Below are positions 3,001 through 62,824 of a stretch of DNA of 64,000 nucleotides, piece after piece. Made by a program: the position numbers and the translations under genes. Position 1 is the stretch's first letter. The number at the start of each line of letters is the position of its first letter. The notes under the pieces were generated by a model, which saw only the letters and a program-made list of their open reading frames with translations, was not told where the DNA came from and ran no database searches. This stretch comes from Pavona decussata (taxonomy: Eukaryota): NCBI GenBank assembly GCA_977016875.1, contig CDRNST010000020.1, positions 5,022,001 through 5,086,000 on the forward strand, given 5' to 3'.

Positions 3001-6000
3001 CTGGTCCCAGTTCACTGCAGTTCTTTCCACCGTACTGTGGAGAGGGATTGGTGCATGTCCTTTTTCGTGTTTGGGAACCCCCGCCACAAGTCACACTGCA
3101 GTCAGACCACTTGCTCCATTTGGTGTAATTACCATCGATTGCTGAGAATTTAGAAAGACATATTCAGCTAGTAAGGCCGTTGTAACTCATGTTAGTATAA
3201 ACCTCATCCCTAAGTACTCACTAATCTGCATTCATTAGTTTTAATGCTTCCTATGAAATGTTCGTTTGCTGAAATGCTTATCAATAATTCTTTTGTCTAG
3301 AAAAACTTACGGCATTTTTTTAGGCTACATTTTCTCGTCTCATCAGAAGGTCCCTGGTCTTCACATCCTTTTCCGCCTGGTTTGGGAGGGGGATTGGTGC
3401 AGGTTCTTGAACGATTCTGAACTCCGTCTCCACACGTCACACTACAATCAGACCACTCGCTCCACTCCGTGTATTTACCATTAGCTTTAGGATTTCCACA
3501 AAAAAAGTTCATATGTTGGGATTAATACAGATTTACCTTCTCAGAGTCAACATTAACTCAAACATAGTTTGTGTGACGCCTTTCTTCTCTTAACCAACAG
3601 ACAAATGCTAATACAGATCTTGAAATCCTGTACTACAGCTTTGAAGGATCTCACTTAACCATAACGGCGGTAATTGTCAGAAATGTATGACAACATTCTA
3701 AGGATAACAGAAAATTGCTTTGTTGGCGAGGCATAAACCCATTTTCACCCTTAGTTAATGTCATATTTTCCGGCTCAATCCCGTAAAGATACCGCCATAA
3801 CCCGGACTATGATCCAGATGAAAACTACAGAAATGTGTTTTGTCATGGATAATCATCTGGAAGAGGCTCGGGTGTGAATTAAAATTTCACCAGGAGCTGG
3901 ATAAGTGAAGATAAGTGTATTAAAAAATCGTGCCAGTTGAACTGAATGAACTGCAGATGATTTGCATAGCACTGAGTAAGAATCACACCGATTTTTGCAT
4001 GTCATAAATATCCCGCTCCCTATACAACTGACCGTACAGATTACTTGGTAAAGGTATTCCAACAGTATTGCAACGGTTTCGCAAAGTGATGGGTGGCAAT
4101 TTTGTTCTTTTTTTAAGATTAATTTTTAAATGCTGAAATAGATAGAAAGTACTGGATGGGTAAAATCGTTAGGGCAAATAATAGCATCTTCAAACAAGGC
4201 AAGTTAAAAGATACTTACGGCAAACCTCAGTGTTGCACTCCTGTGACTCCTTATCTGGGCCGAGAAGGACACAGTCTCTTCCTCCGTTCTCTGGGCGAGG
4301 ATTGGTACAAGTTCTGGTACGATACTTTACCCCACCGCCACAAGTAACGCTACACGGCGTAAACGAACACCACTCACTGTATCCACCATCGATTACTGAA
4401 ATAATAAAGAAAAGCGTCTCCTCTTTAATGGGTCTTTGGCTTCTCATTAAAAGCGTTATACTGGTTATAGGTGATTGTGGCTTCTGAGCTTTTTTAAATC
4501 GTATATAAGGACTTGTCTAGGGATTCACTGCAAGACGTTCGGCCCATGGACTGTTTCAAGATCAATTAAATTTCTTAATCTTAGAAGACGCGTAGCGTTG
4601 AAACGAGTTAAAGAACCTAGGGGGGAGATCCGGGCGGTTGTTTGATTGATCCTTCCATTTCACGTAAATTTTGATAGGCTTTGTCATCAACTGTTAGTGG
4701 AATCAATCATAGGAAACTAACAATGAGAGACGTAAGGAACGCTGGAAACAATATAATTTTTAATAATGCATCCGATGCTTCAGATTGTACCAATTCAAGG
4801 TACAGCACTTACAATCATTAACGTGACGCAGGATTGGTTAAAAACGTTCTCCGTGATGCATAATTCAATAAAAAATTGAGGGTTATGCGTTATTGGTAAC
4901 CCCCCTACCGCCCCCCTTCCCCAACCCCACTCTTTGTCACCCTCGCCTGCAGTCCCATGCTTTTGAGAAAAAAAAATCCCCGTTAACCAGCTACCTCGTG
5001 TGATTTGTAATTCTTGTTTAGAGACGATCAGATTGCAGAACGGAACAGAACACCTACAGAAAATAGCATATAACTGAATACGATAAAGCTATGAGCTCGA
5101 CATGATTATTAAATTTCATCTCAAGCATATCAATTTTATATGTGATATAATAACAATCACTACCAACCAATGACAAGTCAAGTTAAAGTTCAGCATTTTT
5201 AAATTCCTATTTGTTTGGCAATTGGCTATAGATAACCTCATGAACAGTGCTAGCAGATAAAAATTTTTCCCTTTGATGTTGCAGATTGGTAAACCGGAAG
5301 GAATAATAGAATTTGAGACTATGAAACTGATTAAATTGGAGTCTTTCAAGGTTCGTAGCCGTGAACTTTGTTATCATCCCTTGCATAAGAACAAAACGTT
5401 TTACGAAGAATTTTGTTTTACTAGGCCTGTAAATGGCATGTGAAAGTTGGAGATCAAGATCAAACCACCACTTTTCGTGCGATCCATCATCTCACCATCG
5501 AAAACAAAGATGGAATTAAAAGATCACACTTGTGTGCTCTAATAGGTAAATATTTTTTACGGTCCGTTGGTTTTTGCCGAGCTGGGCTGGGCCGTTATTG
5601 TGATTGACGGCAGTGAACAAAACAAATCGCTAAATGACTTTTGAAGATTATTAAAAGGCGCATTGATTACCGCATTTACACGTAGCACACTTTCGCGTCT
5701 CCGCGCTTGGTCCCAGGTGCTGGCAGCTCCTTCCACCACAGCATGGTAGGGGGTTAGTACAGGTTCTTGTACGCCTCTGTTCTCCTCCTCCACAAGTCAC
5801 TGTGCACTCCGTGAAATTCGACCACTGGGAATAACCACCGTCAACAGCTATGAAGATACAAATAGTGACTTTTAATCAACAACGAGTAATCTTTTCCCAA
5901 ATAAGTCAAAAACAATTCAAAGGGTGCATTAACATTCTATTGACAAGAAAACACAGAAAACAAAGTCAATTGCAATGATAAAGAAAGTGGTCTTCTTTGC

Positions 6001-7977
6001 TTTGCTTACGCATTAATTAAACCTTCCATCCGCTTAATGTGCCAAAGTAAGTAGTTTTAATTGTCAACATTTCCACATTTTTAACTGGAAAAACGGATCG
6101 CAAAACTTTGCTCGATAATTTTTCTGTCAATTATTACGTTACTGAACCGTATTTGTGACGCAGTTGGTAAAAGTGTAATAACCTGTCAAGAAGATCTAGA
6201 AAAAAATTGCTAACGACTACGAACAATATATAAGAACTGTTTAAACATACGGCATGGGAAGGAGTTGCATATTTTCTTTTCCACAGCTGGTCCCAGGACA
6301 TTACAATTTTGCCCTCCGTTGCTTGGTGGAGGGTTGTTACAGGATCGCTTGCGAATCCTTACACCACCTCCACATGAGGCATTGCACTCTGAAAACTCAC
6401 TCCACTGAGAGTAGCCACCGTCAATAGCTGAAACAAATAAAATTGTCAGACTCCATTACCATCGCAGGAATTTGAAACGCTTTCTTTGTTTTGGCCTTAG
6501 GGATGCATGCATATTTTCGAATGATGATGAGTCTGATGATGACAGTTTTTCGAAACGTCAGCCAAAAACACCAAAAACGGTGTATCTCAGGACTACATTC
6601 CCCTAGATGCTCATACTTTACCGATTACAATCAATTCATTACCATTGAAACAATATTCCATCCCAACATTAATTTTGTTCCAGGAACATAAATTCCTCAT
6701 CCAGACTGACGCTTGCCACAAATTTCAACTCGAGTTTGGCTTTCATAACGCAAATAATTTTGATTGGTTCATGTGTTTTCAGATGCATGTTTTCATTGGC
6801 TAGTAGCAAATATGATTTTCAAGAGCGTGTACTGAGAACATCTATTTCAATCAAGAAATAAATAAACAAAATTTCCCTTCATTTTTCGAATTTTCTTTTA
6901 GAAATATTTTATAAAAGCAATAGAGGACTTTTTTCCCGTGTTCACATAGCCTCATCTAAACACTCGGAGAGTTTGGAGAATTCTCGAAAGTTATGCAAAC
7001 CCGTGACTGCGTATCGGGTTTGCATAACTGTCTCGAATCTCCTAACTCCCCTCGTGTTTAGATGAGGCTATGTAAACAGGGAAAAAGTCCTCTATTGCTT
7101 AAATGATATGCGCAAATATATATTTCATTTTCATTGCATGTTTTCATTTTCTTAATATATTTGCTTTTTTCCTTGAGCAGCCTACGAGGTGTAAATAAAT
7201 CAAGGCCAAGAGAAATAGTTCCTTTGCATTTACTCTCTTATACTGAGCATGTTTACGACGACGAACTGACATTTACCTTGTGAATAACCTTGCGCTGCAA
7301 AATAAGAGAGAGGGGTCATTTAACTAACAATCAAGATAAAAGAATATTTCTGTAGAAGAACATTTTTGCGATAATCCGAAAATGGAAAGACTACATACAA
7401 TATTAAACATAATGAATTAAAAAATAAAAAGAATCATTAGGTTGATTAGCGTTCAAATTAGACGTCTTTCTTTAAGGGTGCTTTCCCGTTGTCTGACTTG
7501 GCCCGACAGACTGGTCTCTTTGTGATTGGGATGCACCATTTTGAAGGCCTTGCTCTACAGATTCTTAAACGTATACGAAATATAATCAATGTTTAAATCC
7601 TACGTTGATTCGGGTTCCTTCAATTTCTGTATAACCCTCTAAGCCGACTAGATCAACAATTTGATCCAACGTATAGCTGCAGGATTGTTGGCCACGGTTG
7701 TGTGTTTCTACTTGCATTAAAAATGACACGAGGTGTAATTTCAAGGAGTTCAAAGCACTGCTATATATCCAGTGCTTCAAACTAGTGCATTCTCGTTTTG
7801 TGAACTGACCAGCCTGGCCGGCCAGTTCTGACAATTTGGAAAGCGATCTAAGGTCGTTTATGAGAAGGTTCAGTATTGGGGCAAATTATGTCCGTATCAC
7901 AAAACTTTGCCGCGTTGGTATGACTTACCTATCAACAGAAGAAGCAAATATTCAGTGAAACAGTATTGAATATCCAT
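1..7977 (-). CDS. Gene A: secreted TSR-array protein (coadhesin/hemicentin/spondin-like), 5' part; 3' end outside window
   Basis: GT-AG exons: 7929-7977 ([16 protein letters not shown], signal peptide), 7277-7294 (AQGYSQ), TSR exons 6251-6427, 5671-5847, 4219-4395, 3311-3484, 2965-3141, 2127-2297, 1534-1710 and <1-154. All phase 1-1 and open, with Trp-rich N-terminal motif, CxxT/SCG, RxRxC and 6 core Cys. Confidence 0.9.
246..860. mobile_element. Tc1/mariner-pogo-like MITE
   Basis: TIRs CAGTCAACTCTCTC...GAGAGAGTTGACTG; left flank TA, right flank CA (decayed TA duplication); many subterminal GGTCGCTTAC repeats; no ORF. Confidence 0.75.
2552..2912. mobile_element. Decayed tRNA-derived SINE fragments (two, apparently in opposite orientation)
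   Basis: A-box-like TGGTGTAGTGG at about 2558 followed by a SINE-core-like segment; 2775-2912 resembles a reverse-oriented SINE body. Family recognised from memory only. Confidence 0.45.
6527..6630 (+). mobile_element. Degenerate Penelope-like terminal fragment with decayed minimal hammerhead core
   Basis: CTGATGA (6533) ... GAAACGTC (6552-6559), but stem II is disrupted. Confidence 0.45.
6915..7100. repeat. About 185-bp foldback palindrome (MITE-like)
   Basis: AAGCAATAGAGGACTTTTT...ACATAGCCTCATCTAAACAC pairs with GTGTTTAGATGAGGCTATGT...AAAAAGTCCTCTATTGCTT; inner arms GTTATGCAAACCCG/CGGGTTTGCATAAC. Confidence 0.8.
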
Positions 7978-13823: not shown

Positions 13824-13829
13824 TTTATT
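13824..13829 (-). terminator. Candidate poly(A) signal of gene B
   Basis: AATAAA on minus strand about 555 nt past the stop at 14384. Confidence 0.35.
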
Positions 13830-14383: not shown

Positions 14384-17300
14384 TCATTCTTATAAAGAGA
14401 CAAGAAGAGAACAGTTAAATTGAGAAATTGGAAAACAGTGAACGTACGAATCAAGTAGAGAAGAGTCCTTAAAACTGACAAGCAAATAATACAAGGATTT
14501 TCACGAACTTATTTCAAATTGCCTTAAGTATTGTAATTAAGACAAGACAGTGATGCAATCAAAACAGTCCAAATAAATTTTATTCTGTGCAATGTGGAAT
14601 GGAAAAGTAATATTGCTGGGCGGTACATAGACCACTTGCCTAGTCCCAGACTAATTAGTAGACAAATAATAAAAAATAAATACAATTTTCTACAGCACTT
14701 TTCCATGGCAATGATCAAAGCGCTTTACATGAAAAATATGACAACTAAATGAAAAAAAAATCGGCATATCGCAAACGAAAGCAATATACAGACTAACATA
14801 ACACCAAGACTCACGAGACGCTGAAAGAACTTGGACCATAACTACGAACGTTTTCTATTGTTCTATCATGTTTTTGTCATAACTTACCGCAAACTTTTTT
14901 CTTAACATTGCGCAGTTCCGCTGTCAGCTGATCAAATCCTTCAACGGCAAGCACAGACCCCTTTTCACCAGCTATATCACGCAGAATTGTTTTGTCGACC
15001 TTTTTTCCGATCCCTACTGCCACGGTATACAAATCAGCGACCTGCACAACAAAACAAAACAGTAAGCAGGTAATTCTATGGATATGTAAAGAACTAGCAC
15101 GTGATATGTTAAAAGCAAACCCTCTGCCCAAAGCAATCCACACGATTAAAAGTTGACCTTGTGGTCTCTGAGAAACCTGTTACATGTAACCCAAAGAAGG
15201 ACTTGCATCATCTAAGGAAGATTAGTGATACTGTTATGCAAAATTTCCCCTCTAAATTATAACATTATAAGTTATCAAGATGAATTTAACCAGGAGCGAC
15301 ATTCTCGTCGTGGTTAAGTTAACCTGGCGATGAACTGAGCCATAAGCATTTACTGTGACCTGCTGCTAATTCAGTGAAGTCAACTTCACAGCACTTCACG
15401 AAATACCGAGGGTGACAGAAACATCTCAGCACATTCCAGAACCATCTGAAGGTTTTCTAACATTTCTTAAGACTGGCCTAAGATTTGCGAAAACGACTCA
15501 CATTTTCGAGGACGTTTAAAGATTACGCGAAGAATACGCCTGATGGCTTATTTGTCTTTGTTGTGTTATTGCGAAGATATAACTGGGACATTTTTCAAAG
15601 ACTAGAAATGAGTATCCAAAATCTACTGAGATTTCCGTCACACAATTACTTTACTACTCAGTTCTGTTCTAAATCGTTGAAACGGGTTTTAGAAATGGTT
15701 GTCAGTCTTGTTATTGTCTTCTCTTGTTGTTACCGTNNNNNNNNNNNNNNNNNNNNNNNNNNNNNNNNNNNNNNNNNNNNNNNNNNNNNNNNNNNNNNNN
15801 NNNNNNNNNNNNNNNNNNNNNNNNNNNNNNNNNNNNNNNNNNNNNNNNNNNNNNNNNNNNNNNNNNNNNNNNNNNNNNNNNNNNNNNNNNNNNNNNNNNN
15901 NNNNNNNNNNNNNNNNNNNNNNNNNNNNNNNNNNNNNNNNNNNNNNNNNNNNNNNNTATTATATAAGAAAGCATCTATAGAAAAGGGTTACAAAGGTCAC
16001 TTGTCCTTAAGGTCAATATATAATAGACCGTTTGCATCACAAACAAAACATGGCGAGCCGTGGACAGTGCCGGTGACAGCCAGTTCCATGAGGTTTTAAT
16101 ATCAATGTAGAACGCTGGCCATCGAGGTACATGTATATCTTTACGAGGTAGCATCTAAAATAAAAGTGAAGTGAAGTCCTCGTCGTGACGACAATTTTTC
16201 AGTCCGCAGGAGAAATCAAAGTACCGAAGGCGAATCCAAGCCTGAGGAAATAGCTCAGCTACAACAGGCCAAGAATCAAGTAGAACCCTTTGGTTGGTCA
16301 CCAAGTTGAACAGGAAGAAATGAAGTTAGCAATATATTACCCTAACTAAATGTTTGTGAAAATATACCAAATCCCCTTAATTTGTGACCAAAGGACGTAT
16401 TTCGCAATCACAACCCCGACAAGTAGCTTCTTTCTTTCGCAGCATGTGAGTCATTACCGTCGTTCCGCAAGCGATTCTGTCTGGCATTCTATCTTCTGGA
16501 ATATCGACAATAATCCTCTGTAAACCAAACGATTTGAGGACTTTAGACAGTCCACATTATATAAATCGATAAGGGGAATAGTTTCTAAAGAACCTGCAGT
16601 GCTGCGTCGGTTGGGAGTGAAACAAATGTTTCGGTTTATCAACAGAGTTAATAAGGTAATTTGGCCACCGTGAGGAGATTCAAGTGCGGACGTTTCAAGT
16701 GGTAGCCCTTCGTCAGGACGAGTCTATCAAACAAAGGAAAAATAAGAACTGAAAGAAAGAATATATCGAAAACAGTGGTAAGACGAACTTGAGGAAACGC
16801 GAAAACAGCTGCAAACAAAAGCTTAAAATTATGACTTTTAAGCACCGGGGTCTGCCTGGGCCCGAAAACCATAGCAGTTGCTCTTCATAGGGTTGGAGCA
16901 TCGAGCTTTAACGGCTACCATAACGGCTACCAGACATTTTTGGGAGTGTGACGGCACAACGCAAATGAGCAATTATAAAGTAGTAAAGTTTAAATTATAT
17001 TAAGCTCTTTAAAACATGGTACAATTAATTTATTCAATACCTTAGGGTCCTTATGAAACTCAGCAGCAAACTCCGCGAAAGGTCTTGGTTGATTCGTTGG
17101 TTTTCCGTCCGTTAGGAAGATCATAATGTTAGGCTTATCCGGTCTGTCCCCTCCTTGCGGCGAAAACAGGTTGTCCCGAGCTGCTTTCATACCTAAGTCA
17201 GTTCGTGTTTGATACGCCAAGGCTTTACTTATCCTTGAAATCCTCTCCTTCACTTGAGCTTCGTTTTCATTATCTACGTCTTGGAACGTGAACTCAGTAT

Positions 17301-18377
17301 AGGCTTTTTTGTTGAAAGTCACCACACCAAAATGATCTTGGTCTGGAGACTGGTCGAACGAGTCCACCAGTTTGCCCAGAAAATTTATCGCAGTTACCAT
17401 GTGTTTGTTTGTTACGCTCATTGATTTGTCAAGAACAATGCCAATGTCAAGGCCTCCTTTACACGGAGGCGCTAAAGAAAATCAAAGTAACAATTAATCT
17501 TTTGTTTCCTTTATCTGTTTGTTTATAGATACGGTAGCACCGAATGTTTCTTTGTTAATTGAACTTTGAAAGTTATTTCCAGTTTTGTTCTACTTAATTT
17601 TGGGTTTGCTTTCCTGGGTTTTGCGATTGTCAGGTACGTATTCTTTTGTTTCCCTTGGGTTGACTGGCCTAAGCTGTATCAATTGTTAAAAGAAATCAGG
17701 CTCTGGTACTGGCCACAAAAGTGTTCATTGTTTCCCCTAATGGTTCATATTTTACTTATTTCATCGACTTACGGCATTCATTTGTGTTGCATTCCTGTGT
17801 CTCATCTGCTGGTCCTAGTTCACTGCAATCCTTTCCACCATGCTCTGGAGAGGGGTTTGTACATGTCCTTGTTCGCGTCTGTGAACCTCCTCCACAAGTC
17901 GCACTGCACTCAGACCACTCGCTCCATTTGGTGTAATTTCCGTCGATTGCTGAGAAAGGAAGATTTATATTCCATAAAGAAAATTTGAATGAATCAAATG
18001 AAATAAAGGTGCAGTGAAGCGTAGTGTATGGTAAAGCGGTTGTGGTATAGTTTAACGTAGTGTGGTGTGGTATGCTGTAGTTTAGTGAAGTCAGGTGTGG
18101 CATGGTATCATTACGTGTAGTGCGGTGGGGCGGTGTAGTTAAGTGTAGTTACGTGTAGTGTGGTGTGGTGTGGTGTGGTGTGGTGTGGTGTGGTGTGGTG
18201 TGGTGTGGTGTGGTGTGGTGTGGTGTGGTGTGGTGTGGTGTTGATACAAACGAGGCATGAGTGAGGCCATCTTGAATACAACAACTTTTATTCTGAGCTC
18301 CCGTGCCCCATGGTCAGCGACGTAATAACAAACTCAAGACATGAATACATAACATCCCCCTTTCTCTTACAAAAGAA

Positions 18378-18425
<48 letters not shown>

Positions 18426-21155
18426 GAGAAAAAGCAAACAGTAACAATATCAATGTCCAGAGCTAATGTACCAGCTCAGATAAAAGAGTGTCTTCAAAAT
18501 GTGAGGAGTTCCTTACAAGTCCAATTTTACTGGTGGCCTTACTTCCCAGCCAAACAGTGCCACATAGGGACTTTTTTCTGCTTCTCTTGAGTGCCCGCTT
18601 GGGACGGTGAGTCTCTTGTTGAGTCCTTCTGGCTGTGCACAGGGCTCCGCTCCCTTTTGGAGTTCTGGGACGGCCGCTCCCATTGTAGTGTCGTCGCAGG
18701 GACTTGACTTGCTGTTTCAGCATTTGGTGCTGGCGCTGGATCCGGGTTGACACTTGATTGCCGCGCACGATACCCCATGTAGGACTTTGGGCTGTCCTTT
18801 CTCAGGTTACACCGGAGCCGCCGCTCTCCGGTGTCCACTGTATATGACCGAGGTGATGTGTGTTGCTCTTCTACGGTTACGGCTTTCCACTCTTTGGATC
18901 CTGGATTTGGCTTGATTCTAACGTGGTTCCCTGGTTTCAGCGGAGGTATCCACTTTTTGCGTGGGACATGTACTACAGGCTTTGCGGTGGGATCGATTTT
19001 GATTTAATACTTTCCCGGCATCACTCCTGATGCATTTTCCAGCTCTGGGTGCTGATCGAGAAGCTCTTGTACACTTGTATCCAACTTTTGCACTTGCTTG
19101 ATCAAATTGAGATCTTGACACCTTTCCTGAGAGTATAAGTTTCTGTTTGTTGTCGATGATATAAACTTCACATTTATCACTCTGTCCTTGTGTCTCACGG
19201 AGAGGATGACATGGCCTACTGGCGTTATTCGGTGCTGACTGTATGACACGAGTATCTTGCTGGTTGGATTTATTGGAGTGTTTGGTGCTAATTCTTGGAG
19301 TTCACTGGCGCTTAAAACGCTTGCATATGCTCCGGTATCAAGTTGGTATCGCAGGGTCTTGGACCCTGCTTGCGCACTTTCTAGATATTCGTCAGTTTCG
19401 CTCCTCGCCCATTTGTCGTTAACACTATTCACCTCGAGATATGACAGCTGTAGTAGATGCATATCTTGGCCTTGGTCTTCTTCGTTGTTCCTACAATAAT
19501 CTTGATCAATTGTATTGACTCTTCCTGCTGGACTACTGCAGACACTTGCAAAATGCCCCACCTTGTCACACCGTCTACAGGGATAATTTTTCGCGTGACC
19601 CTTTTCTTGGGGTCTGTGGCTGTTGTACCCACACCATGTGCGCTTTTGGGACTTCCCACTGCCGTCTCCTCTGTTCAGTTGCTTTGGCTTTCTTCGCTTG
19701 CCGGGTTGTCCCTTTTTGTCTACAAGTGCATTTACTTCAACTCTCGGATCTTCTACTGCCATTACTTGTATCCCATCTTTGGTAGATTCGAACATGGCAC
19801 CCTATATCTATGGCTGTATTCAAGGTCAGGTTTTTACTTTTTTCTAGGCAGCGCTGTCTCACATGGTCATCCAGGGATTTGCAGGCAATTGCGTTACGGA
19901 TTAGCTTATCTGTCTCAGTTATATCCAGGCCTCTTGCAAAGAGTTTAAAGTCAGTGACTAACCTATCAAATGACTTTCCCTGTTGCTTCCGTCGTCGATT
20001 AAATTTAACCGCTGCCATAAAAGGATTCTTTTTGGCCTCGAGGTGAGCTTTGAACTTCCCAGCAACTCTTTCTAACACATCTCTCTCGCCAACAGTCTGG
20101 ATATATTCTCGTGACCCAGTTTATAAGGATCCCCATTGCAAAGTGGGGTAGATTTCACGGCCCTTGTCGCCAACGAGGCTCATTAAGTTGCAGATCTTTT
20201 CTTTCTCAGTGCATTTGCCGAGTGGTCCCCCAAATGTGAATTCACAATGTTGATAAAATCATTTCCACTCTTTACTCAGGTCTGAAGCCTCCCAGTTCAT
20301 AACCGACCAGTTGTTAGTTGAATTCGTGTATTTTTCTGCCATTTCGAAGTGGTTTTCTTTCTCTTAAAGTCGATTAAGACGTTAAAAATCTCACTACTTT
20401 GACACCATGTTACATTCGAGGCATGAGCAACTTACGGCGTCTTGAATACAACAACTTTTATTTTCAGCTGCCATGTCCCATGGTCAGCGGCATAATAACA
20501 AACTCGAAACATGAACACATAACAGGTGTAGCTTAGTGAAGTCTGGTGTGGTATGGCGTAGTTACGTGTAGTCTGGTGTGGTGAAGTTAAGTGTAGTGTG
20601 GTGTGGTTTGGTGGTGTTAAGTGTGGTTGTGTGTGGTGGTGTTAAGTGTGGTTGTGTGTGGTGGTGTAGAGTGGGACTCCTCAAATCCACGACAAAAGAA
20701 GCATAGCAAGCTAATTTAAAACTTACGGCAGGTGTCTGTATTACATTCTTGTGTCTCACTAGCTGGTCCCAGTTCACTGCAGTCCTTTCCACCATGCTCT
20801 GGAGATGGGTTGGTACATGTCCTTGTTCTTGTTTGAGAACCTCCTCCACAAGTCGCACTGCACTCAGACCACTCAGTCCATTCAGTGTAGTTACCATCGA
20901 TTGCTGAGAAAATGAGAGTGAGACAGTTGTTAGTGCTATACTTGCGGTGTAAGATACCGACTTTGTTGTTGTTAAAATCAATGCTCAGCTAACCCTGACT
21001 ACAAGTGCCTCCATGGTGAGTCGCCATCGTACCCTAATCGCAGAGTTTAGGTATGCCCATCAAATTCATAGCTATAAACGTTAAATAGAAGAAAGATCCT
21101 TGCATTTGGTACGCAACTTAAGCAGTTGCAAAAAGCCTGAAAAAATTCAGGCTTG

Positions 21156-21199
<44 letters not shown>

Positions 21200-24100
21200 G
21201 TACCAACTGAGCTATCAAGCCAACTGGAAGCTGGTCATATTGTCATACTGCTTAAGTTGCCAGGATCTTTCTGCTATTTAATTTTTCATACGCAGTTCAA
21301 AACATATTTTTCATATATCCATATTCAACACCAAATGTCATGATCTGCTACTACTGCCTCTTGCAAAAACTAATAAATATCAGAGGAGTTTTAAAATAAA
21401 TGGTGTTCGCGCAAACAATGCTTTGCCTCGAAACATCAGGCAAATAAAGAAGCTTAACAAACGTCACTGAAAAGTTTTTTTTTTTCAACGTTACCATGCT
21501 CCCACCGATAGCGTAACTCACTGCTCAGTATATAAAGCACGTACAATCCTTGATTCGCTCTGACGAAGGGCAAAAGGCTGGTCAGTTTTCACTGGGACAT
21601 GAGCATAGGCATAAGAATAAAGATAAACAAGGATAGACGCACGCGCAAGAAACCACTCTTTGACGGAGTTCCCGATCAGCACCCCTGGATTTTAAGCAAG
21701 ATGGCGGACGAAACGATTGACTGCTTTGTGCTTATGCTTATGTCGGCCCCGTTCTCATTAGTGAAAGCAGCGCCATAAAAATTAGCACAACAACAAAGTT
21801 CCTAGTCTCCTGCTTATGCTTACGCTTATGGTTATGGTTATGCTTATGGTTATGCTTATGCTTATGCTTATGCTTATGCTTATGCTTATGCTTATGCTTA
21901 TGCTTATGCTTATGCTTATGCTTATGCTTATGCTTATGCTTATGCTTATGCTTATGCTTATGCTTATGCTTATGCTTATGCTTATGCTTATGCTTATGCT
22001 TATGCTTATGCTTATGCCTATGCCTATGCTTATGCTTATGCTTATGCTTATGCTTATGTCCTAGTGGAAACAAGGCTTAACAGTCGAAACGTCTGCACTC
22101 GAATCCCTTTACGGTGGCGAAATTTACGACGGAATTTTCTTCAAGAATAGAGAAAGAGAAAAAATTCTGATCAATATTGCTCACCTATACGTCTTGAAGC
22201 TTACCGCGAGTCATGACATATGTTCGTAAAAGATTCCGTTCACAATAAATGTTTATTGCAGTTTTTAGTTTTTAGTGGGCAACAGCATCCTCTATAAGTA
22301 AGACTTTAAAGAGAACATTAAGGCGCATGGAAAACTACTTAAAACTTACGGCAAGGGTTTTTGTTACATTCCTGTGTCTCATCTGCTGGTCCCAGTTCAC
22401 TGCAGTTCTTTCCACCATGCTCTGGAGGGGGGTTGGTACATGTCCTTGTTCTTGTTTGGGAACCCCCACCACAGGTCGAACTGCACTCAGACCATTCGCT
22501 CCATTTGGTGTAATTACCATCGATCGCTGAGAATGTAAGAATATGCGTCAAACGGTGTTGCTTAATAAGAATTGTGTTTAAGAAGATATATAAACCCCCT
22601 TGGGAAGTAATTACAAATTTAACGGCACGGCTTAGCTCGAATTTTTTAAGAAGATATGAAAAATATCTCGGCCAGTTATTACAAACTTTAAAGAAACACT
22701 TAACCTAGAAGTTCTTATTCGGGTGATAATTTGAGGCTACAATAGTGTTATTGCTAATGCAGTTCGCTTTTTCATGGAGAAAGACAAACAAGTTATCATT
22801 GTACCAAGGATTGTTTAAAGTCTTTGCGCGAACACGGGAAGGTCTCTGCAAGTTCAAGTTCAAGTTAAAACTCACCACAGTGGTCTATATTACATTCCTG
22901 AGAAGAAAAGAAGAAAAGTTCAAAGTGTATGGAAAACTAATGAAAACTCACGGCAGGGGTTTGAGTTGCATTCCTGTGTCTCATCTCCTGGTCCCAGTTC
23001 AGTGCAGTTCTTTCCACCGTACTTTGGAGGGGGGCTGGTACATGTCCTTGTTCTTGTCTGTGAACCTCCTCCACAAGTCGCACTGCATTCAGACCACTCG
23101 CTCCATTTGGTGTAATTACCATCGATCTCTGAGAATATACAAGTTTGCGTCAGCAAACTTTGATTTACGTTGTAGTTTGATTACAGTTGTTTTTAAGAAG
23201 AAGTTGAAACTCCCTGAGATACCTTTTAAGAACTTTTTAAAGTAACATTGAACTAATAATTTCCTATTAAGTCGTTTATTGTAGAGTTCACAACACAATG
23301 TCACTGGCAATATAATTCACATGCGATTTCTGCACGTACAATACATACCGTTGCTGAAATTCCTGCCAACCGAATTCCAAATACTTATGATATTAAAATA
23401 GATTAAAACAAAGCCAAGATATAATAAAAATCTCCCCACTCGAATGAAGTTAATTCGAGGGAGCTTTAACTTCAAAAAACAGGGAATTCTTTGTTGTTGT
23501 TCATAAATAATAAGCCTTGTTGTTTTTCATATGATCGTTTTTCCCACACAAAAAAAAACTTCTCAACACCCAAGAGAAAGAAGAGGTAAAAAGTGGTGAG
23601 TTTCTTTTTAAATATCGTTTTGAAATACCTAACGAAAACGATTTTATGTGAAAGAAATGTGATGTTATGTTTTAAACCTGTTAAATAAATGATAGAGGTA
23701 TTTTTCAGTCAGAGGGTTTTCTTAGTATCAGCCGTTTCTCGTTGACTGAAGGCAGCCTCTATCATTTATTTACCAGGCCTAAAACCTAATCTCACAGTAT
23801 AAAGCGGTATAAAGGATGTTTGTTACATGAACCTAGTTAAATGGCCTAGCTCCCATGAATCTGCTATAGATCAGTGGTAGAGCATCCGTACCAGCAATCG
23901 GAGGATCATACGTTCGAGCACTGTTGGGAGAACTCGGTTTTCTTTTCATAGTATGCATACTATAACTCTATCACGTAAACAATTTGGTTCACAAAAACAG
24001 GTTTTAACTTTGAGCAGTTGCAAAGCATCCTTTAGTGGACATCGTCAAAGTTCATAACGCCCTTAACAAGAATTTTAAAGCAAGTGCGTATAAAACTGAC

Positions 24101-27100
24101 TGATCAAAACTCACCACAGGGGTTTGTATTACATTCCTGTGTCTCATCTGCTGGTCCCAGTTCACTACAGTTCTTTCCACCGTACTGTGGCGCCGGGTTG
24201 GTGCAATTCCTTGTTCGTGTTTGGGAACCCCCTCCACAAGTCACACTGCATTCAGACCACTCGCTCCATTTCGTGTAATTGCCATCGATCGCTGAGAATG
24301 AACGAATATGCGTCAGACAACATTAAATGATACTGTAGTTTAATAAGAATTACGTTTAAGATATAACAGCCCAGTTGGGCCAGTAATTACAAATTTACCC
24401 GTGCAGTTTACAGTCAACTCGCTCTAAGCGGACACCTCTCTAAGGCGAACACCTCTTTAAGGCGGACAGTAAATTTAGTCCCTGCCGAATTTCACTTGTT
24501 TCTCTGTAACTGAACTCTCTCTAAGGCGGACATCTCTCTAAGGCGGACAACGGACACTTTTTTCCAACATGTTGGTTCGAAAAACCTCTCAAGGCGGACA
24601 CCGAATGTTTTAGAAATTTTATAACAGGTCCAAAATTCCAAAAAAAAAAAAAAATAGCGCAATCTGATATAAGTGGTTGTAAAATATACCGGACCTAAAG
24701 GGAGCAAGAGGTGAAAATAGAGGAACATTTTGAATTGATAATAAGTTAAGTTTGCCTTATTTACATAACTACTTTTACAAGACAACTGAAATCATATTCG
24801 CAACGAACACGCGAAGGTCGCTAAACATGTAGGACAAGTAGTCAAATAGTCTCAAAAACCCCCAGTCCAACCCCTGGCCCTCTCGGGTGGCTTAGCTTCT
24901 AAGCCCGGCGAAACTGTTTCCACTGTTGGACATGCTAACACGTACTGTAAAGTAAAATACTGTAAAGAAATATAGAATGAGGAAAAGGAAACAATTAATC
25001 TTGCGTCTTTAAAGTTAAGCGGTCTTATAAAGTGGTAGCAAGTGTTTCTGTAAATATGAAACGCAAAGGACAGTTCACATTTATAGGTTTAACTTTGACC
25101 AGACATATATAAATGGACAAAATCAAGGCATTCTCCAGTTTCTTAAAGAGAAGTTCAAGGTATATGGAAAACTACTGAAAACTAACGGCAGGGATCGGAG
25201 TTGCATTCCTGTGTCTCATCTGCTGGTCCCAGTTCAGTGCAGTTCTTTCCACCATATTTTGGAGGCGGGTTGGTACATGTCCTTGTTCTTGTTTGTGAAC
25301 CTCCTCCGCAAGTCGCACTGCATTCAGACCACTCGCTCCATTTGGTGTAATTACCATCGATCTCTGAGAATACACAAGTATGCGTCCACAAACTTTGATT
25401 AACGGTGTACTTTAATTGAAACTCCCTGAGATAGTTGTTAAGAACGTTTTATAGCAACATTTAACCGAGAAATTCCTATTAAGTAGTTTATTATAGAGTT
25501 CGCAACGCGGTGTCACTGCCAATACAATTCACTACGATTTCTGCAGGTAGAATACATACCCTTGCTGAAACATCCTGCCAACAGAATTCCAAAAATTTAT
25601 GATAGTAAAAGAAATTACAACTGACAAAGCCAAGATGTTTTAATAATCTCCACACCCAAACGAGAGTTTAATTTCGGGAAGCTGTAACTCTAAAAGACAG
25701 GGGATTTTTTTTAGTTCATAAATGAGAAGGCTTGTTGTTTTTTCACATGATCTTTTTTCCGACAAAAATAAACTTAAATTCTCAACACCTAAGAGAATGA
25801 AGGGGTAAAGAGTGGAGAGTTTCTTTTTAAATATGGCTTTGAAATATGTCACGTAAACGATTTATGTAAAAGAAATGTGATGTTATATTTTAAGCCTATT
25901 AAATAAATGATAGACGTATTTTTCAGTAAGACTTTTTTCTTTTTTTTTCTCGCGTATGCCCTTCCCAACTGACTGAAGGCAACCTCTATCGTTTATTTAC
26001 CAGGCCTAACATAATATCACAGTTTAAAGGATGTTTGTCACATGGACCTCGTTAAATAGCCTAGCTCTCCTAAATCTCCTATAGCCCAGTGGCAGAGCAT
26101 CCGTGGCAGTAATCGGAGGATCGTATAACCGATTCCTGTTGGGAGAACTCAGGCTTCTTACTGACTGAAAAAAATAGCTCACAATAACTCTATCACATAA
26201 AAGTTAGTTTACAGAAACGAGTTTCAACTTTGAGCAGTTGACAAAGCTTCCTTTAGTGGACATCGTCAAAGTTCGTAACGCTTTTAACAAGAATTTTAAA
26301 GTCAGTACGTATAAAAGTAACTGATCATAACTCACCACAGGGGTTTGTGTTACATTCCTGTGTCTCATCTGATGGTCCTAGTTCACTGCAGTTCTTTCCA
26401 CCGTACTGTGGCGCTGGGTTGGTACAATTCCTTGTTCGTGTTTGGGAACCCCCTCCACAACTCACACTGCATTCAGACCACTCACTCCATTTGGTGTAAT
26501 TGCCATCGATCGCTGAGAATGTATCAATATGCGTCAGACAACTTTGAACGATGGTGTGGTTTAATCAAAATTGCGTTTAAGAACATATAGCAACCAATTT
26601 GGGCCAGTAAGTACAAATTTAATTATAACGGTGCAGTTTATACAACATACGAAAAATATCTGGTAAGTTATTACAAAGTAGTCTCTTTAAAGAAACGATG
26701 AACATATAATTTTCCTATCCGGGTGTTGATTTCACTGGTTGCTTATACAGTTCGTATTGCTACGGAGATAGACAAACAAGTTGTCATTGTACCTAGTAAT
26801 GTTTGAAGTCTGCACCACTGGAAGGGGAGTTTAATTCGAGGGAGCATCAGGTCGAAATAGAGGAAAATTTTGAATTGATAAATAGTTAAGTTTGCCTTAT
26901 TTACATGACTACTTTTCCAAGACAAGGGAAATCATATTCGCAAAGAACACGCGAAGGTCGCTAAACATGTAGGACATGCCTACGTGTACTGCAAAGTAAA
27001 GAAACGCAAAGAAGTATAGAATGAGGAGACGGGAACAATTAATCTTCCGTCTTTTAGGTTTAGCGGTCTTGCAAAGTGGTAGCAAGTGTTCCTGTAAATA

Positions 27101-28542
27101 TGCACAAAATATGAACAAAATCAAGGTATTCTCAAGTCCCTACAGAGAACTTCAAAGTGTATGGAAAACAGACTACTGAAAACTCACGGCAAGCATCTGA
27201 GTTGCATTCCTGTGTCTCATCTGCTGGTCCCAGTTCACTGCAGTTCTTTCCACCGTACTGTGGTGTGGGGTTGGTACATGTTCTTTTTCGTGTTTGAGAA
27301 CCCCCTCCACAAGTCGCACTGCACTCAGACCACTCACTCCATTTGGTGTAATTACCATCAATCGCTGAGAATGTATCAATATGCGTCAGAAAACTTTGAA
27401 CGATTGTATGGTTTAATCAGAATTGCGTTTAAGAAGACATAGCAACCCATTTGGGCCAGTAATTTCAAATTTAACGGTGCAGTTAAGAAAATATGAAAAG
27501 TATATAGGAAGTTAATACAAACTAGTTTCATTGAACCTAGAAAATAGAAACATTGAACCTAGAATTTTCCTATCTGGACTTTAATTTGATTGCCGATTCA
27601 GTTCGCATTGTTACGGAGATAAACAAACAAGTTATAATTGTACCAAGGAATGTTTGAAGTCCTTGAACTGGAAGGGGAGTTTAATTCGAGGGAGCATCCA
27701 GGTTATAATAGAGGAACATATTTAATTCATACAGTAAATATAGTTAAGTTTGCCTTATTTACACAACTACTTTTCCCAGACAAGTGAAATCATATTCGCA
27801 ACGAATACACGAAGGTTACTTAACATGTAGAACATGCTTACACGTACTGTAAAGTAAAGTACTGCAAAAAAGTATAGAATGAGGAAAAGAAACAATTAAT
27901 CTTGAAACTTTAAAGCAAAGAGAACTTCAAAGTGTATGGAAAGCTATTGAAAACTCACGGCAGGGCTTTGTGTTGCATTCCTGTGTCTCATCTGGTGGTC
28001 CCTGTTCACTGCAGTTCTTTCCACCGTACTTTGGAGGGGGGTTGGTACATGTCCTTGTTCTTGTCTGTGAACCTCCTCCACAAGTCGCACTGCATTCAGA
28101 CCACTCGCTCCATTTGGTGTAATTACCATCGATCTCTGAGAATGTACAAGTTTGTGTCAGCAAACTTTGAATAACGGTGTAGTTTAATTAGATATTTTCA
28201 AAGAACTTTTCTTTAATGGAAACTCCGTGGGATGGTTGTTAAGAACGTTTCAAAGTAACATCTAACCGAGAATTTCCTTTTAACTAGGTTATTATAGAGT
28301 TCACAACCCAGTGTCACTGCCAATACAATTCACATGCGATTTCTGCAGGTAAAATACATACTCTTGCTGAAAAATCCTATTAACCGAATAATTCTAACTA
28401 CTCATGATAGTAAATAAATTACAACTGACAAGGCCAAGATATTTTACGAATCTCCACACTCAAACTAGAGTTCAATTTGGGGGGAACTTTCAGTAATTTT
28501 AAATGCTAGGGGAATTTCTAGTTCATAATTAATAAGGACATC

Positions 28543-28580
<38 letters not shown>

Positions 28581-31500
28581 AAAGGTGATGTTTTTCACAT
28601 GATTACCGTCCCCACACAAATGAACTTAAATTCTCAACAACCAAGAGAAAAAAGAGTGAAGACTTTCTTTTTAGATATACTTTGAAATATTTAACGTAAG
28701 CGATTCATGTGAAAGAAATGTAGTATAAAGGATGTTTGTTACATGAACGTAGTTAAATGGTCTAACTCCCAAGAATCCTTTAGCTCAGTGGACCAGCAAT
28801 CGGAGGGTTCTACGTTCGATCCCAGTTGGGGGAACTCGGTTTTCTTTTTAGCTTCTTTTTCCTAGTATCCCTGTATTACCGACTGAAAAATTACCTCACA
28901 ATAACTCTTTCACGTAAAAGATTTGGTTCACAAAAACAGGTTTTAAACTTGAGCAGTTGGCAAAGAGTCCTTTAGTGGACATCATCAAAGTTTGTAACGC
29001 CCTTAATGAGAATTTTAAAAGTCGGTACGTATAAAGTAACTGATCAAAACTCACCACAGGGGTTTGTGTTACATTCCTGTGTCTCATCTGCTGGTCCCAG
29101 TTCACTGCAGTTCTTTCCACCGTACTGTGGTGTGGGGTTGGTACATGTCCTTGTACGTGTTTGAGAACCTCCTCCACAAGTAGCACTGCAGTCGGACCAT
29201 TCGCTCCATTTGGTGTAATTTCCATCGATAGCTAAGAATTTTTGAGTACGCGTTAAGTAACTTTAGTTAACACTGCACTTTATTTAAGAATGCTTTTTAA
29301 GAGCAAATTATTACTCCCCGGGACAGATACTCAGAACTGGTTGTTTTAAAACAAAAATTAACCGAGAATCTCTAATTGTTGGTTTTCATTAATGCGACAA
29401 CATAAGCTTGGTGGCGTGTACAAAATTCAAACACACAGGAATAAAATGGTACATAAAAAGGAATAGGAGAAAAACGTGTGGCCGTGTATTAATCTTCAGA
29501 ACAAAGTTATCGAGAAACCGATTTTCAGGAAGAGAAAAGAGAGAAATCAACCTCACGCGTGAAATAAAAAAAGATAATGAACCCAATATTCCCTGGTCCC
29601 CTACGGAATTGAGAAGATGACACTTTTCCATTATTGCCATACTTGAGAATTGAAACTGGAGAAATACAAAATATTGTTTCCTCTTTTACATTTTTAACAT
29701 TCTTATGATTCTGGCTGCCACAAATTTTGATCAAAATTTCAACATATTTTATTCCTTAAGCAACGCAATATAACAACAATCAATTTTCGTAGATTAATTT
29801 TTGTACTAATGTGTTGAACATGATGAGAGAAGCGCTTTGTGATTACTTTAGGGGAAGTTTTGGGACGTTAAGAATTTCAATGACGTCATACAAAAACCAA
29901 CAATTTGGCTGCTTATTATAGCGTTCATAATACCGTGTCACATCAACACAGTTTACATCTAATGTATCGAGACAGTTAACGTCATCATTTGAAAAGTATA
30001 CCAAACGAAATCGAAGTACTTATCAGATTGATAAAAGTTACAATGATACCAAGACAGATTCAAAGTTTCTGGTCTCGACAACAGCTTAAATAATTCGAGG
30101 AAGCGTAAACTTCAAACGAGAGGGACGATTTTGTTGAGTTGATGAATAGTTAGACTAGTCTCTTTCACAGGATTACGTTCGCAAACAAGGGAAAATAAAA
30201 AATTTTTCATGCAAGGAAGATGAGATAGCAAACAAGAAATAGTCAAATACATCACTCACTTTATGTTGTCGAAGAGCCTTGAAAAATTATAGCAAGTGTT
30301 TTTAGTTTGTATCGTAAACATTTTAGTTCACAAACATATTTTAGCTTTGAGTAGGTGACAAAGCTTTCTTTATTGGTAGTCTTCAAGGTTTTATCACTCT
30401 TTATCTTTTAAGGTGCATGAAGTAACTGATTTGAACTCACGACAGGGTTCTAGGTTACATTCCTGTGTTTCTTCTTCTGATTTCACTTTATTGCATTTCT
30501 TCCCAGAAAACTTGATTATTAGACTGCATAATGTTAGAGTATTTACATCTCCGGAAATAAATTCAAGATGCCTTTAAATTTACTTTATTAAAACTTACGG
30601 CAGGGATTTTTGTTGCATTCTTGTGTCTCTTCAGCTGGTCCCAGTCCTTTGCAGTCCTTTCCTCCATACTGTGGCGCGGGATTGGTACAATTCCTTGTTC
30701 GTGTCTGTGAACCTCCTCCGCACGTTGCACTGCACTCAGACCATTCGGTCCATTCGGTGTAATTACCATCGATCGCTGAGAATATAAGAACCGGTGTTAA
30801 AACCGTAGCACAATTCTGGCTGCATTGAGCTTGTTAATTTCAATTTGTTTTATACGTACAAATATTCTAAGGCCCATCTTAGAGAGAATTTGTGTCAGCT
30901 TTCGTCATGACTTAACTGAACTTCTTGAATACTTTTCATCTCAGAAAAACGACGTTAAAGAAAAAAAATCAAATTTTCAGGTCTATGTGGAATAAATACT
31001 TACGGCAGGGGTTTTTGTTACATTCCTGTGTCTCATCTGCTGGTCCCAGTTCACTGCAGTTCTTTCCACCGTACTGTGGCGGGGGGTTGGTACATATCCT
31101 TGTTCGTGTTTGGGAACCCCCTCCACAAGTTGCACTGCACTCAGACCACTCGCTCCATTTGGTATAATTACCATCGATCGCTGAGAATATACAAATGCAT
31201 GTCGAGCTATCAAAAATGTTGCATTTAAACTCTAAAAAAACAACTTTGTAGTGTTTTATACTGAATACCTATCTTTCAGTGAATTTCTTCAAAAAGTACA
31301 AAACATTGTCCTAGGAAATTAAACGTTGGTGGAGGATATGATAAACTTGACCAAAATTTCCCGTAAGCATTCCCATAATGTTCATTTATCGAATGGAACA
31401 ATGTTTTCTACTTGACTGTTTTAGTTAATCCACTAGCTATATCTTCTTTTATTATTGTCTTGTACTTAGTTATGTTTTTAAATTGACTCTGAAAAGCCCC

Positions 31501-34500
31501 GTGNNNNNNNNNNNNNNNNNNNNNNNNNNNNNNNNNNNNNNNNNNNNNNNNNNNNNNNNNNNNNNNNNNNNNNNNNNNNNNNNNNNNNNNNNNNNNNNNN
31601 NNNNNNNNNNNNNNNNNNNNNNNNNNNNNNNNNNNNNNNNNNNNNNNNNNNNNNNNNNNNNNNNNNNNNNNNNNNNNNNNNNNNCGCTACCAATGAACTT
31701 ACGGCATGGCTTTGGGCTGCATTTTCTCGTCTCATTAGCAGGCCCCTGGTCTTCACATCCTTTTCCGCCAGGTTTAGGAGGGGGATTGGTGCAGGTTCGT
31801 GAACGATTCTGAACTCCGTCTCCACACGTCACACTACACTCAGACCACTCGCTCCACTCCGTGTATTTGCCATCGGCTTCAATATTTCCGGAAAAAAGTA
31901 AGTTAGATACCGATTAGAAAATATATTTTTTGTCCTCCTGATCTTTGGCAAAAAAATAAAATAGAAAGACGTGTACTATGGATGTTTGATTTGTCAGTCT
32001 TCTATAGCGTTCAAATAAAACCTACTGAAAGGTATTCCACCGCGTTACTGGAAAGCTGATCAATTTTGAGTTCAAGTTGTTCCAGTAGCTTAATAAATTG
32101 AAGTGAATATAAAAAATCATACTGAACTGCATGAACTGCAGATGAATCTGCATGATGGATTTTACGTTGTAAAAGCACAGCAACGGTACATTTGTAAATT
32201 CAGAGTTCCAATTATGTGCTTATTTTCTCTTTCGAGATTGAGGGTGAAATTACTTATAAAAATGTACTAGAATCTTGTAATCTTGACAAAAGCCGAGTTA
32301 AAAGAAACTTACGGCAGGCCTCGGTATTGCATTCTTGCGACTCCTTGCTTGGTCCGAGATGATCGCAGGTTTTTCCTCCGCCTTCTGGGGAAGGATTGGT
32401 ACAAGTTCTGCTACGGTGCTTCACTCCACCGCCACAAGTGACGCTACATGCTGTAAACGGACACCAATCACTGTATCCACCGTTAATTACTGGAATAATA
32501 AAGAGAAATGTCTCCTTAATTATGCCTCGGCTACTGGAAAGAATTCCCTGATTATAAGATGTACAGGCATATGTGGCTCCGAAGGGCTTTTAAAGGCGTT
32601 TCCATGCAGTGCTTTGGTAAAGTAAACAATAAGCAAGGAACCGCACGACGAAAATGCTACAAGTATACGCAGGATCTGTAAAAGATCTAATCAGCCAAAA
32701 ATATAAATGACTCAAATTTCTGCAAGGCTGATCGGACTGCGTAGAAAACTTAACACGATAGCGACATGATAGAGACCAAACTGAGAAGTTTTGCTTTTCT
32801 CATTTAACGTATTGCGACAGCGACATGATATTTCAGTTCTATTGTTTATTGTTCATAGTCACGCGCTATGACGTGGACGGATGTCTGAATTTGGGCCCAT
32901 CCGAAATCGGCTACCACATGCATTTGGTAGACCACTCGACTCGCGTTCGTGTTCTACTCTTTGCTCTGCTACACCGTGCTGACGAGAGCCAACCAGCTCG
33001 AAACAGCTGTCCACGGTTGCCGCATTCTGTTGATTCTCGGTATGGTCTCTATCATGTCGCTGTCGTGTTAAGTTTTCTACGCAGTCCGATCAGCCTTGCA
33101 GAAATTTGAGTGTTTTGGTAACCGTACCTAAAGTCCTTAACTCGCTTCAGACATTCGTCTCTTAAGTGAAGCGATGTTAATCATTTAATTCAAAGAATTT
33201 CGTCCATGAGGATAGCAGATTGTACGTGACGATGTATTGGAAGGTGGAAGAAGATAAAAAGCAAGACAAATGTAGTGTATAGCGTTTCTACAATTTTATC
33301 GTTCAGTGTGATTGACTTGATTAGTTGTGTTTCATTTAAGACATCTTTTGACGGGCAGTCAGAATGAAGGACGAAACTGGATACTAACAGAAAAGGTCCA
33401 ATAAGCTACAAAATAAAATAACTAAAATCGAAACTTAAGTCACCTCAATCATCCAGGCGCAAACAGTTCAATTTTAGGAACAATAAAAGTCTTACCGAAT
33501 GTTTTGAAAAGGTTGGCAATGAAAACTTGAGGACTTTTTGTGAAACGACATCGCAACAGGGCTTTTGTTTTGTTATGCTTCGTTTCGTTTTTAGAAGATT
33601 CAGAATGACGCGAAAGAGAGAAGACAGGTGAAAGAAGAGAGAGGAGAGGAGATAAGACTTAAATGGAGATTTTGGACAACATTACTTGAGCGGGCCCGTT
33701 TTCAAATGAAATATCAAGTAAAACTTATAATAATTGCTTATGTTGAGCATTTCCTTATTCCAGTGTGATATGGAAATAGAAAACCTCTGAAAAGCACCTG
33801 AAGCGAAGATTTTCTTGATATAAATCGCACAAGATTTGGAATTTTTTAAGGTTTGCAGATATCACATTGTTTTCATCCTTTACATAATCATTCACTGCTT
33901 CACCTTTCATTTAACACGCCAGGTCTGTTCGCCATTCATGCTTATTTTGTCAACTTTAGTTTATATCGTTAGTAAAAAAAAAAATAACATAATTAATATC
34001 ATTTATATCAGTAATAATTACTATTAACGCTTTTTTGTAATTTCCCGTGTATGGTAATTGAACATTTAAAGTTCAACACCCAACCAACGGTTACGTTTTT
34101 CACTGTTGTCAATTGCCTTAGAAAACAAAAAAAGTCTAGTTCATAGGAGGACTTCCTGACTCTGGCCCCTGGCCTATTGGTTAAATCCGTAATTATGATT
34201 GACGGTAATAATAAATGCAATCGCTAGTTGGATTTTGAACAACAGACTTCTCTGTCATCGAAAGGCACAGTGATTACCGCATTTGCATGTGCTACACTTC
34301 TGTGTCTCCTCGTTAGGTCCCAGGTGCTCGCAGCTCCTTCCCCCACAACATGGCAGGGGATTATCGCAGGTTCTTGTACGCTTCTGTACTCCTCCTCCAC
34401 AAGTCAAGCTACACTCGGTGTAATTCGACCACTGGGAATAACCACCGTCAACAGCTATGGAGAAAAAATACTGACTTCTAATGGTTCAGCTGTAACGTCA

Positions 34501-62791: not shown

Positions 62792-62824
62792 CTGCGAGGA
62801 AAAGGAAAACACGCATGAATAGTA

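Follow-up and report, generated by a model that had tools for sequence, protein, structure and literature searches.

What do four additional cysteines contribute to two neighbouring copies of a domain that normally carries six? Thrombospondin type 1 repeats (TSRs) are textbook six-cysteine modules, and the question is raised by a 64,000-nucleotide stretch of the stony coral Pavona decussata (contig CDRNST010000020.1, positions 5,022,001 to 5,086,000; hereafter the window) that contains two tandem genes, A and B, both on the minus strand, each encoding a series of TSRs and one VWA (von Willebrand factor type A) domain. In both genes the second repeat (TSR2) has nine Cys, among them a vicinal pair, and the third (TSR3) has seven, so that neither stays within the limit of six Cys and three disulfides that holds for the class. 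A first-pass annotation had reported these counts and proposed the region as a head for covalent polymerisation. The counts stand: the four exons in question have exactly the boundaries given there, and lie on the minus strand. We find that the nine- and seven-Cys head is real, conserved and specific, and that its extra Cys probably add disulfide bonds within or between chains.

The positions of the extra Cys were assigned by alignment to human thrombospondin-1 (TSP-1) and within the family. In TSR2, two are adjacent and occupy the loop between the third and fourth canonical Cys (C3 and C4), in place of the two residues that precede Gly-Gly; they are six and seven residues past C3 and five and six ahead of C4, and the four Cys (C3, the vicinal pair and C4) are packed within 13 residues. 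The third lies three residues past C5 (C5-x-x-C-x-C6, in the motif KC-x-x-C-K-C). The single extra Cys of TSR3 comes right behind the Trp that forms the middle aromatic of strand A, in WCSF in gene A and WCPF in gene B. Along the chain, 12 residues separate the two single extras, which face each other across a TSR2-TSR3 junction with Gly-Gly in its linker. As had also been claimed, the residues around the extra Cys differ between the two genes, and every other complete TSR exon in the window (18 of 18; the exon at 154-11 is incomplete at the window edge) encodes six Cys.

In every respect tested save the number of Cys, the head repeats are group-1 TSRs. All head exons match the Pfam family TSP_1 (PF00090), with 31.5-37 bits for TSR2 and 40-44 bits for TSR3 against a cut-off of 21.6. 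The six canonical Cys, C1 to C6, are present and invariant in both repeats and align with those of TSP-1; the signature of the stacked aromatic strand A and of strand B, Y/W-x-x-W-x-x-F and R-x-R, is invariant as well. TSP-1 itself trimerises through Cys outside its TSRs. Its TSR2-TSR3 pair (PDB 1LSL, 3R6B and 7YYK) shares the group-1 fold, the same six canonical Cys positions and ~50% identity with the coral repeats, but each TSP-1 repeat has exactly three disulfides, with Gln-Met or Gln-Phe where coral TSR2 has Cys-Cys.

Although the first-pass annotation was correct that both paralogs carry the extra Cys, it underestimated the family. The pattern PCCGGR identified two further copies of the head upstream on the same strand (loci L001 and L002), each with an identical 6/9/7/6 arrangement of Cys over TSR1-4 and its own VWA tail; the cluster is thus a four-gene tandem family, two members of which fall in the window. 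Three patterns, PCCGGR, GGYS[DE]WCxF and KCxxCKC followed by a splice donor, each have exactly four matches in the 602-Mb genome, with all TSR matches in this cluster, and reversed-pattern controls for the latter two gave 0 matches; the occurrence of the motifs is not due to chance. Pattern matches on contigs C59 and C120 were inspected and are not TSRs. TSR-VWA paralogs on contigs C35, C326 and C171 were rejected as carriers of the head, as they have only six-Cys TSRs. Such distant paralogs on other contigs, whose VWA domains are 48-56% identical, have 2-4 canonical TSRs and no 9/7 head.

The head also occurs in other corals. Word searches with alignments that included a longer relative recovered two adjacent genes in Oculina patagonica (XP_078378562.1 / KAL9966592.1 and XP_078378572.1 / KAL9966591.1, with adjacent locus tags), named coadhesin-like or hypothetical in the databases; both encode a leader, a six-Cys TSR1, a nine-Cys TSR2, a seven-Cys TSR3, TSR4, a stalk and a C-terminal VWA domain. 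In Acropora muricata, XP_067021197.1 comprises the leader, TSR1 and a TSR2 of nine Cys, an Acropora-like genome locus (L035) carries the entire head and a VWA domain, and coral contigs from ENA, JGI and Logan (L029-L034) supplied three additional complete or partial heads. All nine Cys are invariant in 11 TSR2 sequences and all seven in 11 TSR3 sequences, with 28 and 32 other columns varying, respectively. Oculina (suborder Vacatina) and Acropora (suborder Refertina) straddle the basal split of Scleractinia. Loss of the extra Cys in orthologs had been named as evidence that would count against the polymerisation proposal; when the comparison was made, all four proved invariant across the four paralogs and relatives in both suborders.

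Among the copies, TGC and TGT have replaced each other at all four extra Cys codons. Ratios of nonsynonymous to synonymous substitution among paralogs are 0.09-0.25 for TSR2 and TSR3 and 0.13-0.71 for TSR1 and TSR4, making TSR2 and TSR3 the most constrained exons of the head. The four-Cys package is under purifying selection across Scleractinia. The same data bear on whether the extras lack any special function, having arisen as a neutral peculiarity of the lineage or through gene conversion between recent duplicates. In support of that explanation, synonymous divergence (dS) among paralogs A, C and D is low, at 0.1-0.35, but synonymous sites are saturated between species (dS >1 versus L031), and the persistence of the extra Cys on both sides of the suborder split, the synonymous turnover in their codons and the strong constraint on their exons leave neutrality effectively refuted.

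No copy of the 9/7 head was found outside stony corals, in word- and length-limited searches whose failure to find one means little. A degenerate DNA pattern for the head motif gave only chance matches, in GC-rich bacterial contigs, when run against JGI metagenome contigs. A HMMER library search with the VWA exon brought up no full-length member of the family, its matches being mainly proteins with several VWA domains and fragments the size of an exon, and a word search with the bare TSR2 exon under a length filter returned only eight canonical six-Cys exon open reading frames.

To consider which bonds the extra Cys could form, the TSR2-TSR3 segment of Oculina was modelled with AlphaFold2. An alignment of 56 tandem-TSR rows yielded a mean predicted local distance difference test score (pLDDT) of 95.6 and a predicted template modelling score (pTM) of 0.55, and was the only one to give a usable model, as a 12-row alignment reached a pLDDT of 44. 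Both of its domains can be superposed on the crystal structures of TSP-1 TSR2-3, the PDB entries named above (115-116 of 118 columns, root-mean-square deviation 3.8 Å), so the model is an extended, TSP-1-like rod. The junction has a pLDDT of 91-97, and alternative packing is not indicated. On an extended rod the two single extras would be ~25-35 Å apart, as estimated from residue spacing and strand length. This would be too far for a bond within one chain, and the model therefore mildly favours interchain over intrachain linkage.

Going by the known TSR fold, at the N-terminal tip of TSR2 the vicinal pair would lie next to the canonical cap disulfide, C3-C4, so it could be satisfied locally, either as a vicinal disulfide beside C3-C4 or by re-pairing among C3, the vicinal pair and C4, and at most two Cys would be left odd: one at the C-terminal end of TSR2, the other in the middle of strand A of TSR3. 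Exposed unpaired Cys are normally held in the endoplasmic reticulum (ER) until paired, and spare Cys serve covalent assembly in fibrillin, von Willebrand factor (VWF) and mucins. Being out of reach of each other on an extended rod, the single extras would form interchain disulfides, giving head homodimers or oligomers, or links to another matrix protein; the rods would be covalently joined near their N-termini, with the VWA domains at their free ends. Interchain disulfides through the two single extras, with the vicinal pair satisfied locally, are the best explanation we can offer, although we hold it tentatively and would put it somewhat short of an even chance. The first-pass annotation had argued that odd Cys counts leave the extras free for inter-domain or inter-chain bonds; this may hold for the two singles, which would stay odd, but not for the package, which has an even number of extras and a pair that could be satisfied locally.

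Several points weigh against interchain linkage. The extras number four, an even count, and a pair of odd Cys that lie in neighbouring domains with just 12 residues between them is the classic signature of one intrachain bond; for a homodimer, one spare Cys would suffice. The alignment behind the AlphaFold2 model is dominated by canonical six-Cys TSR pairs, from which the extended geometry may be inherited, its pTM is only 0.55, and the 25-35 Å spacing is an estimate, not a distance read from coordinates. Instead, the extra Cys of TSR2 at C5+3 might pair with that of TSR3 at W+1 to staple a 12-residue loop over the junction of a monomer, the vicinal pair again being satisfied locally, in which case the extras would do no more than make the joint between TSR2 and TSR3 stiffer or kinked and strengthen the tip of TSR2. 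The two singles always co-occur in adjacent domains, the motifs occur only as one package, and extra Cys pairs in neighbouring modules of repeat proteins usually bond with one another. Fold-back is sterically conceivable given the Gly-Gly linker and the free outer edge that strand A has in the established TSR fold, but the confident model is extended, places the two residues far apart by estimate and, at the junction, gives no sign of another packing. We regard such a staple as a serious but rather unlikely alternative to interchain linkage.

A third possibility is that the Cys are redox-active or competent for exchange: the vicinal pair would be a strained, labile disulfide switch, and the singles would be partly reduced and exchange with matrix partners, or the Cys cluster at the TSR2 tip would bind metal. 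The crowding of C3, the vicinal pair and C4 would suit this, and there are precedents in VWF, where the vicinal Cys1669-Cys1670 of the A2 domain is described as a redox switch, and in ADAMTS13, where partially reduced thiols of TSR5-8/CUB link covalently to VWF (PMC6916347). These precedents do not come from corals, however, and the neighbourhood holds no further conserved redox motif of the CxxC kind, though TSR2 does end in C-x-x-C-x-C. Moreover, free thiols on secreted proteins usually lead to thiol-mediated ER retention. On balance, redox or metal-binding roles seem improbable.

Comparison with better-known proteins helps to place the interchain reading. VWF, gel-forming mucins and fibrillin-1 are likewise extracellular adhesive or matrix proteins whose extra Cys form interchain disulfides, an analogy rather than a homology, and VWF has a vicinal Cys pair in its A2 domain as coral TSR2 has its Cys-Cys. 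The nine-Cys hybrid domain of fibrillin has an unpaired Cys. In those proteins the relevant domains are CTCK, VWD and hybrid domains, whereas the coral proteins have none of these three and carry their spare Cys on a TSR scaffold; Pfam found no CTCK or VWD/D-assembly domain in the window exons or the orthologs. Properdin, among the best structural matches after TSP-1, is a TSR-only rod that oligomerises via its terminal TSRs, but its oligomers are non-covalent and head-to-tail, and it has neither a VWA domain nor the Cys-Cys motif. The C-terminal TSRs of ADAMTS13 do link covalently to another matrix protein through partially reduced thiols (PMC6916347), but the reactive Cys are canonical ones, partly reduced and chiefly in the CUB region, and not conserved supernumerary Cys. 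Apicomplexan TRAP-like adhesins have an N-terminal VWA domain followed by TSR, transmembrane helix and cytoplasmic tail; in the coral proteins the order is reversed, and the protein ends just past the VWA domain. A cnidarian survey describes TSRs as six-Cys domains and lists TSR-VWA architectures without further detail (PMC5446238). In open-access text we found no published description of a 9/7-Cys TSR pair or of Cys-Cys in the C3-C4 loop, in agreement with the first-pass annotation, which knew of none.

The closest relatives are scleractinian 'coadhesin-like' proteins such as the two from Oculina, which have the same architecture, a TSR2 72-88% identical and tandem genes too; their names are automatic, and stalk length varies from gene to gene. 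Coadhesin proper, known from Acropora millepora (UniProt B3EWZ3) and Stylophora, is a secreted extracellular matrix protein with TSR and VWA domains that skeletal proteomes contain and that skeleton-secreting cells express (PMC3748352, PMC8086859, PMC13060117). Skeletal coadhesin is reported with an FA58C/discoidin domain, which the present family lacks according to the Pfam lists of the Oculina proteins (TSP1-type and VWA only) and the exons of gene B (TSR and VWA only); the contrast with B3EWZ3 is drawn from reported domain content rather than from a sequence alignment.

The genes share one layout (Table 1): a short signal peptide is followed by the fixed head of four TSRs and by a stalk of canonical TSRs that varies, and a single VWA domain closes the protein at the C-terminus. 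In both A and B a short first exon encodes a 16-residue hydrophobic leader ahead of TSR1-4, and the VWA domain is spread over two exons, with the stop soon after. By six-frame motif scan and exon finder, each TSR here corresponds to one single phase-1 exon of 171-177 nucleotides (nt) with AG/GT borders. Joins between exons are supported by the splice consensus, by phase and by annotated proteins of Oculina and Acropora; in searches and folding, the annotated Oculina protein stood in for a spliced model. Contigs from four coral metatranscriptome runs over window positions 2900-8150 belong to a related coral (90-95% alike), include intron and have joints off the splice sites. Gene B has 12 stalk TSRs; gene A has four inside the window and two outside it, where both of its VWA exons also lie (L036). 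The tail reads as a VWA domain with residues of the metal ion-dependent adhesion site type (DKSMS, QTRTD and TDG). The whole rod is probably N-glycosylated, since strand A of TSR2 carries an invariant N-F/Y-T sequon (N10 and T12 in 11 of 11 sequences; window 5818-5810 and 34425-34417, minus strand) and N-Y-T opens every stalk repeat.

Table 1. Exons and codons of the two TSR-VWA genes in the window (all positions are window positions)
Feature	Position	Strand	Remarks
Gene A exon 1: start codon and 16-residue signal peptide, phase-1 donor	7929..7977	-	Block conserved with gene B; N-terminus type as in Oculina proteins
Gene A TSR1 exon, 6 Cys	6251..6427	-	PF00090, 51 bits
Gene A TSR2 exon, 9 Cys	5671..5847	-	PF00090, 31.5 bits
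Gene A TSR2 vicinal Cys-Cys codons TGC TGT, C3-C4 loop	5738..5743	-	
Gene A TSR2 codon for the third extra Cys, which lies between C5 and C6	5678..5680	-	
Gene A TSR3 exon, 7 Cys	4219..4395	-	PF00090
Gene A TSR3 extra Cys codon, directly after strand-A Trp	4367..4369	-	
Gene A TSR4 exon, 6 Cys; final exon of fixed head	3311..3484	-	PF00090
Gene A stalk TSR exons in window	3141-2965, 2297-2127, 1710-1534, 154-11	-	Last cut by window edge
Gene B exon 1: start codon and signal peptide	37992..38040	-	
Gene B TSR1 exon, 6 Cys	35051..35227	-	PF00090
Gene B TSR2 exon, 9 Cys	34278..34454	-	PF00090; extra codons 34350-34345 (Cys-Cys) and 34287-34285
Gene B TSR3 exon, 7 Cys	32313..32489	-	PF00090; extra codon 32463-32461
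Gene B TSR4 exon, 6 Cys	31703..31876	-	Assembly gap starts 19 nt downstream
Gene B stalk: 12 canonical 6-Cys TSR exons, decayed partial TSR, intronic gag-like retroelement	17773..31180	-	
Gene B VWA exon 1, DxSxS (DKSMS) and TDG motifs	17041..17471	-	PF00092, 96.5 bits
Gene B VWA exon 2 and stop (…KKVCGKL, TGA 14879-14877)	14877..15041	-	Join supported by spliced relative P0019 and Oculina proteins

None of the assembly gaps touches a TSR2 or TSR3 exon. The gap at 11643-11779 falls between genes, past the 3' end of gene B and before gene A starts, and that at 15737-15956 falls in the intron separating the two VWA exons of gene B, which are joined directly in P0019 and the Oculina proteins. The third, at 31504-31684, lies in the TSR4-TSR5 intron of gene B, just past the TSR4 donor, and might conceal a further stalk exon. 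In gene B the stop codon sits inside a good splice-donor consensus (TGCG/GTAAGTTATGA; window 14877-14894, minus strand), and gene A has the same ending (…VCGKL). In gene A the signal peptide includes a Cys (MDIQYC…; codon 7962-7960, minus strand) where gene B has Trp; this Cys is presumably removed together with the leader.

The four-gene cluster spans G000:C20:4966000-5060000 (L001, L002, L036 and the window), and its stalks vary widely, the number of canonical TSRs ranging from ~3 to 12 or more. Three of the four paralogs have in common a stalk exon of 171 nt that is two loop residues short (CTEPQYGG, not CTNPxPxxGG; window 2127-2297, minus strand; L001 1072-1242; L002 1347-1517), which marks shared stalk ancestry despite stalk expansion. 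Within the gene B stalk, a decayed TSR of which the C-terminal third remains (window 30397-30573, minus strand) lies between two intact exons, and the introns contain gag-like open reading frames with a weak zinc knuckle, remnants of a retroelement (18542-20120, minus strand), and a dinucleotide microsatellite of ~330 nt (21741-22076). Oculina has two adjacent copies of the gene, and contig ERZ25067879:ctg73317 has two different TSR3-type exons; tandem duplication therefore recurs across corals.

Other sequences show variants of the architecture. Among P0278, P0396, P0397, P0398 and P0399, the Acropora muricata RefSeq isoforms all end by intron read-through after TSR2, and in two spliced transcripts from JGI the frame shifts within TSR2, immediately ahead of the vicinal pair, and a stop follows; L035 nevertheless has the full gene. 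These truncated forms may reflect an isoform that is short, unproductive splicing that is regulated, or an artefact of the gene models. P0085 and P0094, of 267-291 residues, are secreted proteins reduced to a minimum: a signal peptide, a single reduced TSR and a single VWA domain 42-44% identical to that of the family. They may represent a basal form of the TSR-VWA architecture.

Adjoining the cluster is a large separate gene (window 45380-63000, minus strand) with ~20 calcium-binding EGF exons followed by the zona pellucida (ZP) domain halves ZP-N (47631-47197) and ZP-C (46463-46128), as matched by Pfam, and a transmembrane-like exon; its product is a uromodulin-type ZP protein. One of its introns carries a zf-RVT reverse-transcriptase fragment (53611-54261, minus strand). 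Lists of coral skeletal matrix proteins also include ZP-domain proteins.

In conclusion, a nine-Cys/seven-Cys pair of TSRs that is unchanged across the deepest split among stony corals marks a site of function in a secreted TSR-VWA family that is unstudied and expanding in tandem, and whose database relatives carry the names of coral skeletal-matrix proteins. Covalent polymerisation through this site is a plausible hypothesis, as yet unproven, and the 'bundles or networks' of the first-pass annotation are speculation. That an independently evolved, 'cysteine-studded' two-TSR module of Scleractinia joins TSR-VWA rods head to head, or as staggered polymers, into a disulfide-linked network strikes us as a long shot; such a network may be peculiar to Scleractinia and linked with the organic matrix of their skeleton or extracellular space. 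If it exists, its principle of assembly would resemble that of VWF or fibrillin while having arisen independently. Should the single extras instead bond within a chain, they would define a new disulfide-stapled TSR junction, of relevance to TSR structural biology. If they bond between chains, these spare Cys would explain how the rods assemble into an insoluble matrix and would offer a simple handle on the assembly of the coral extracellular matrix.

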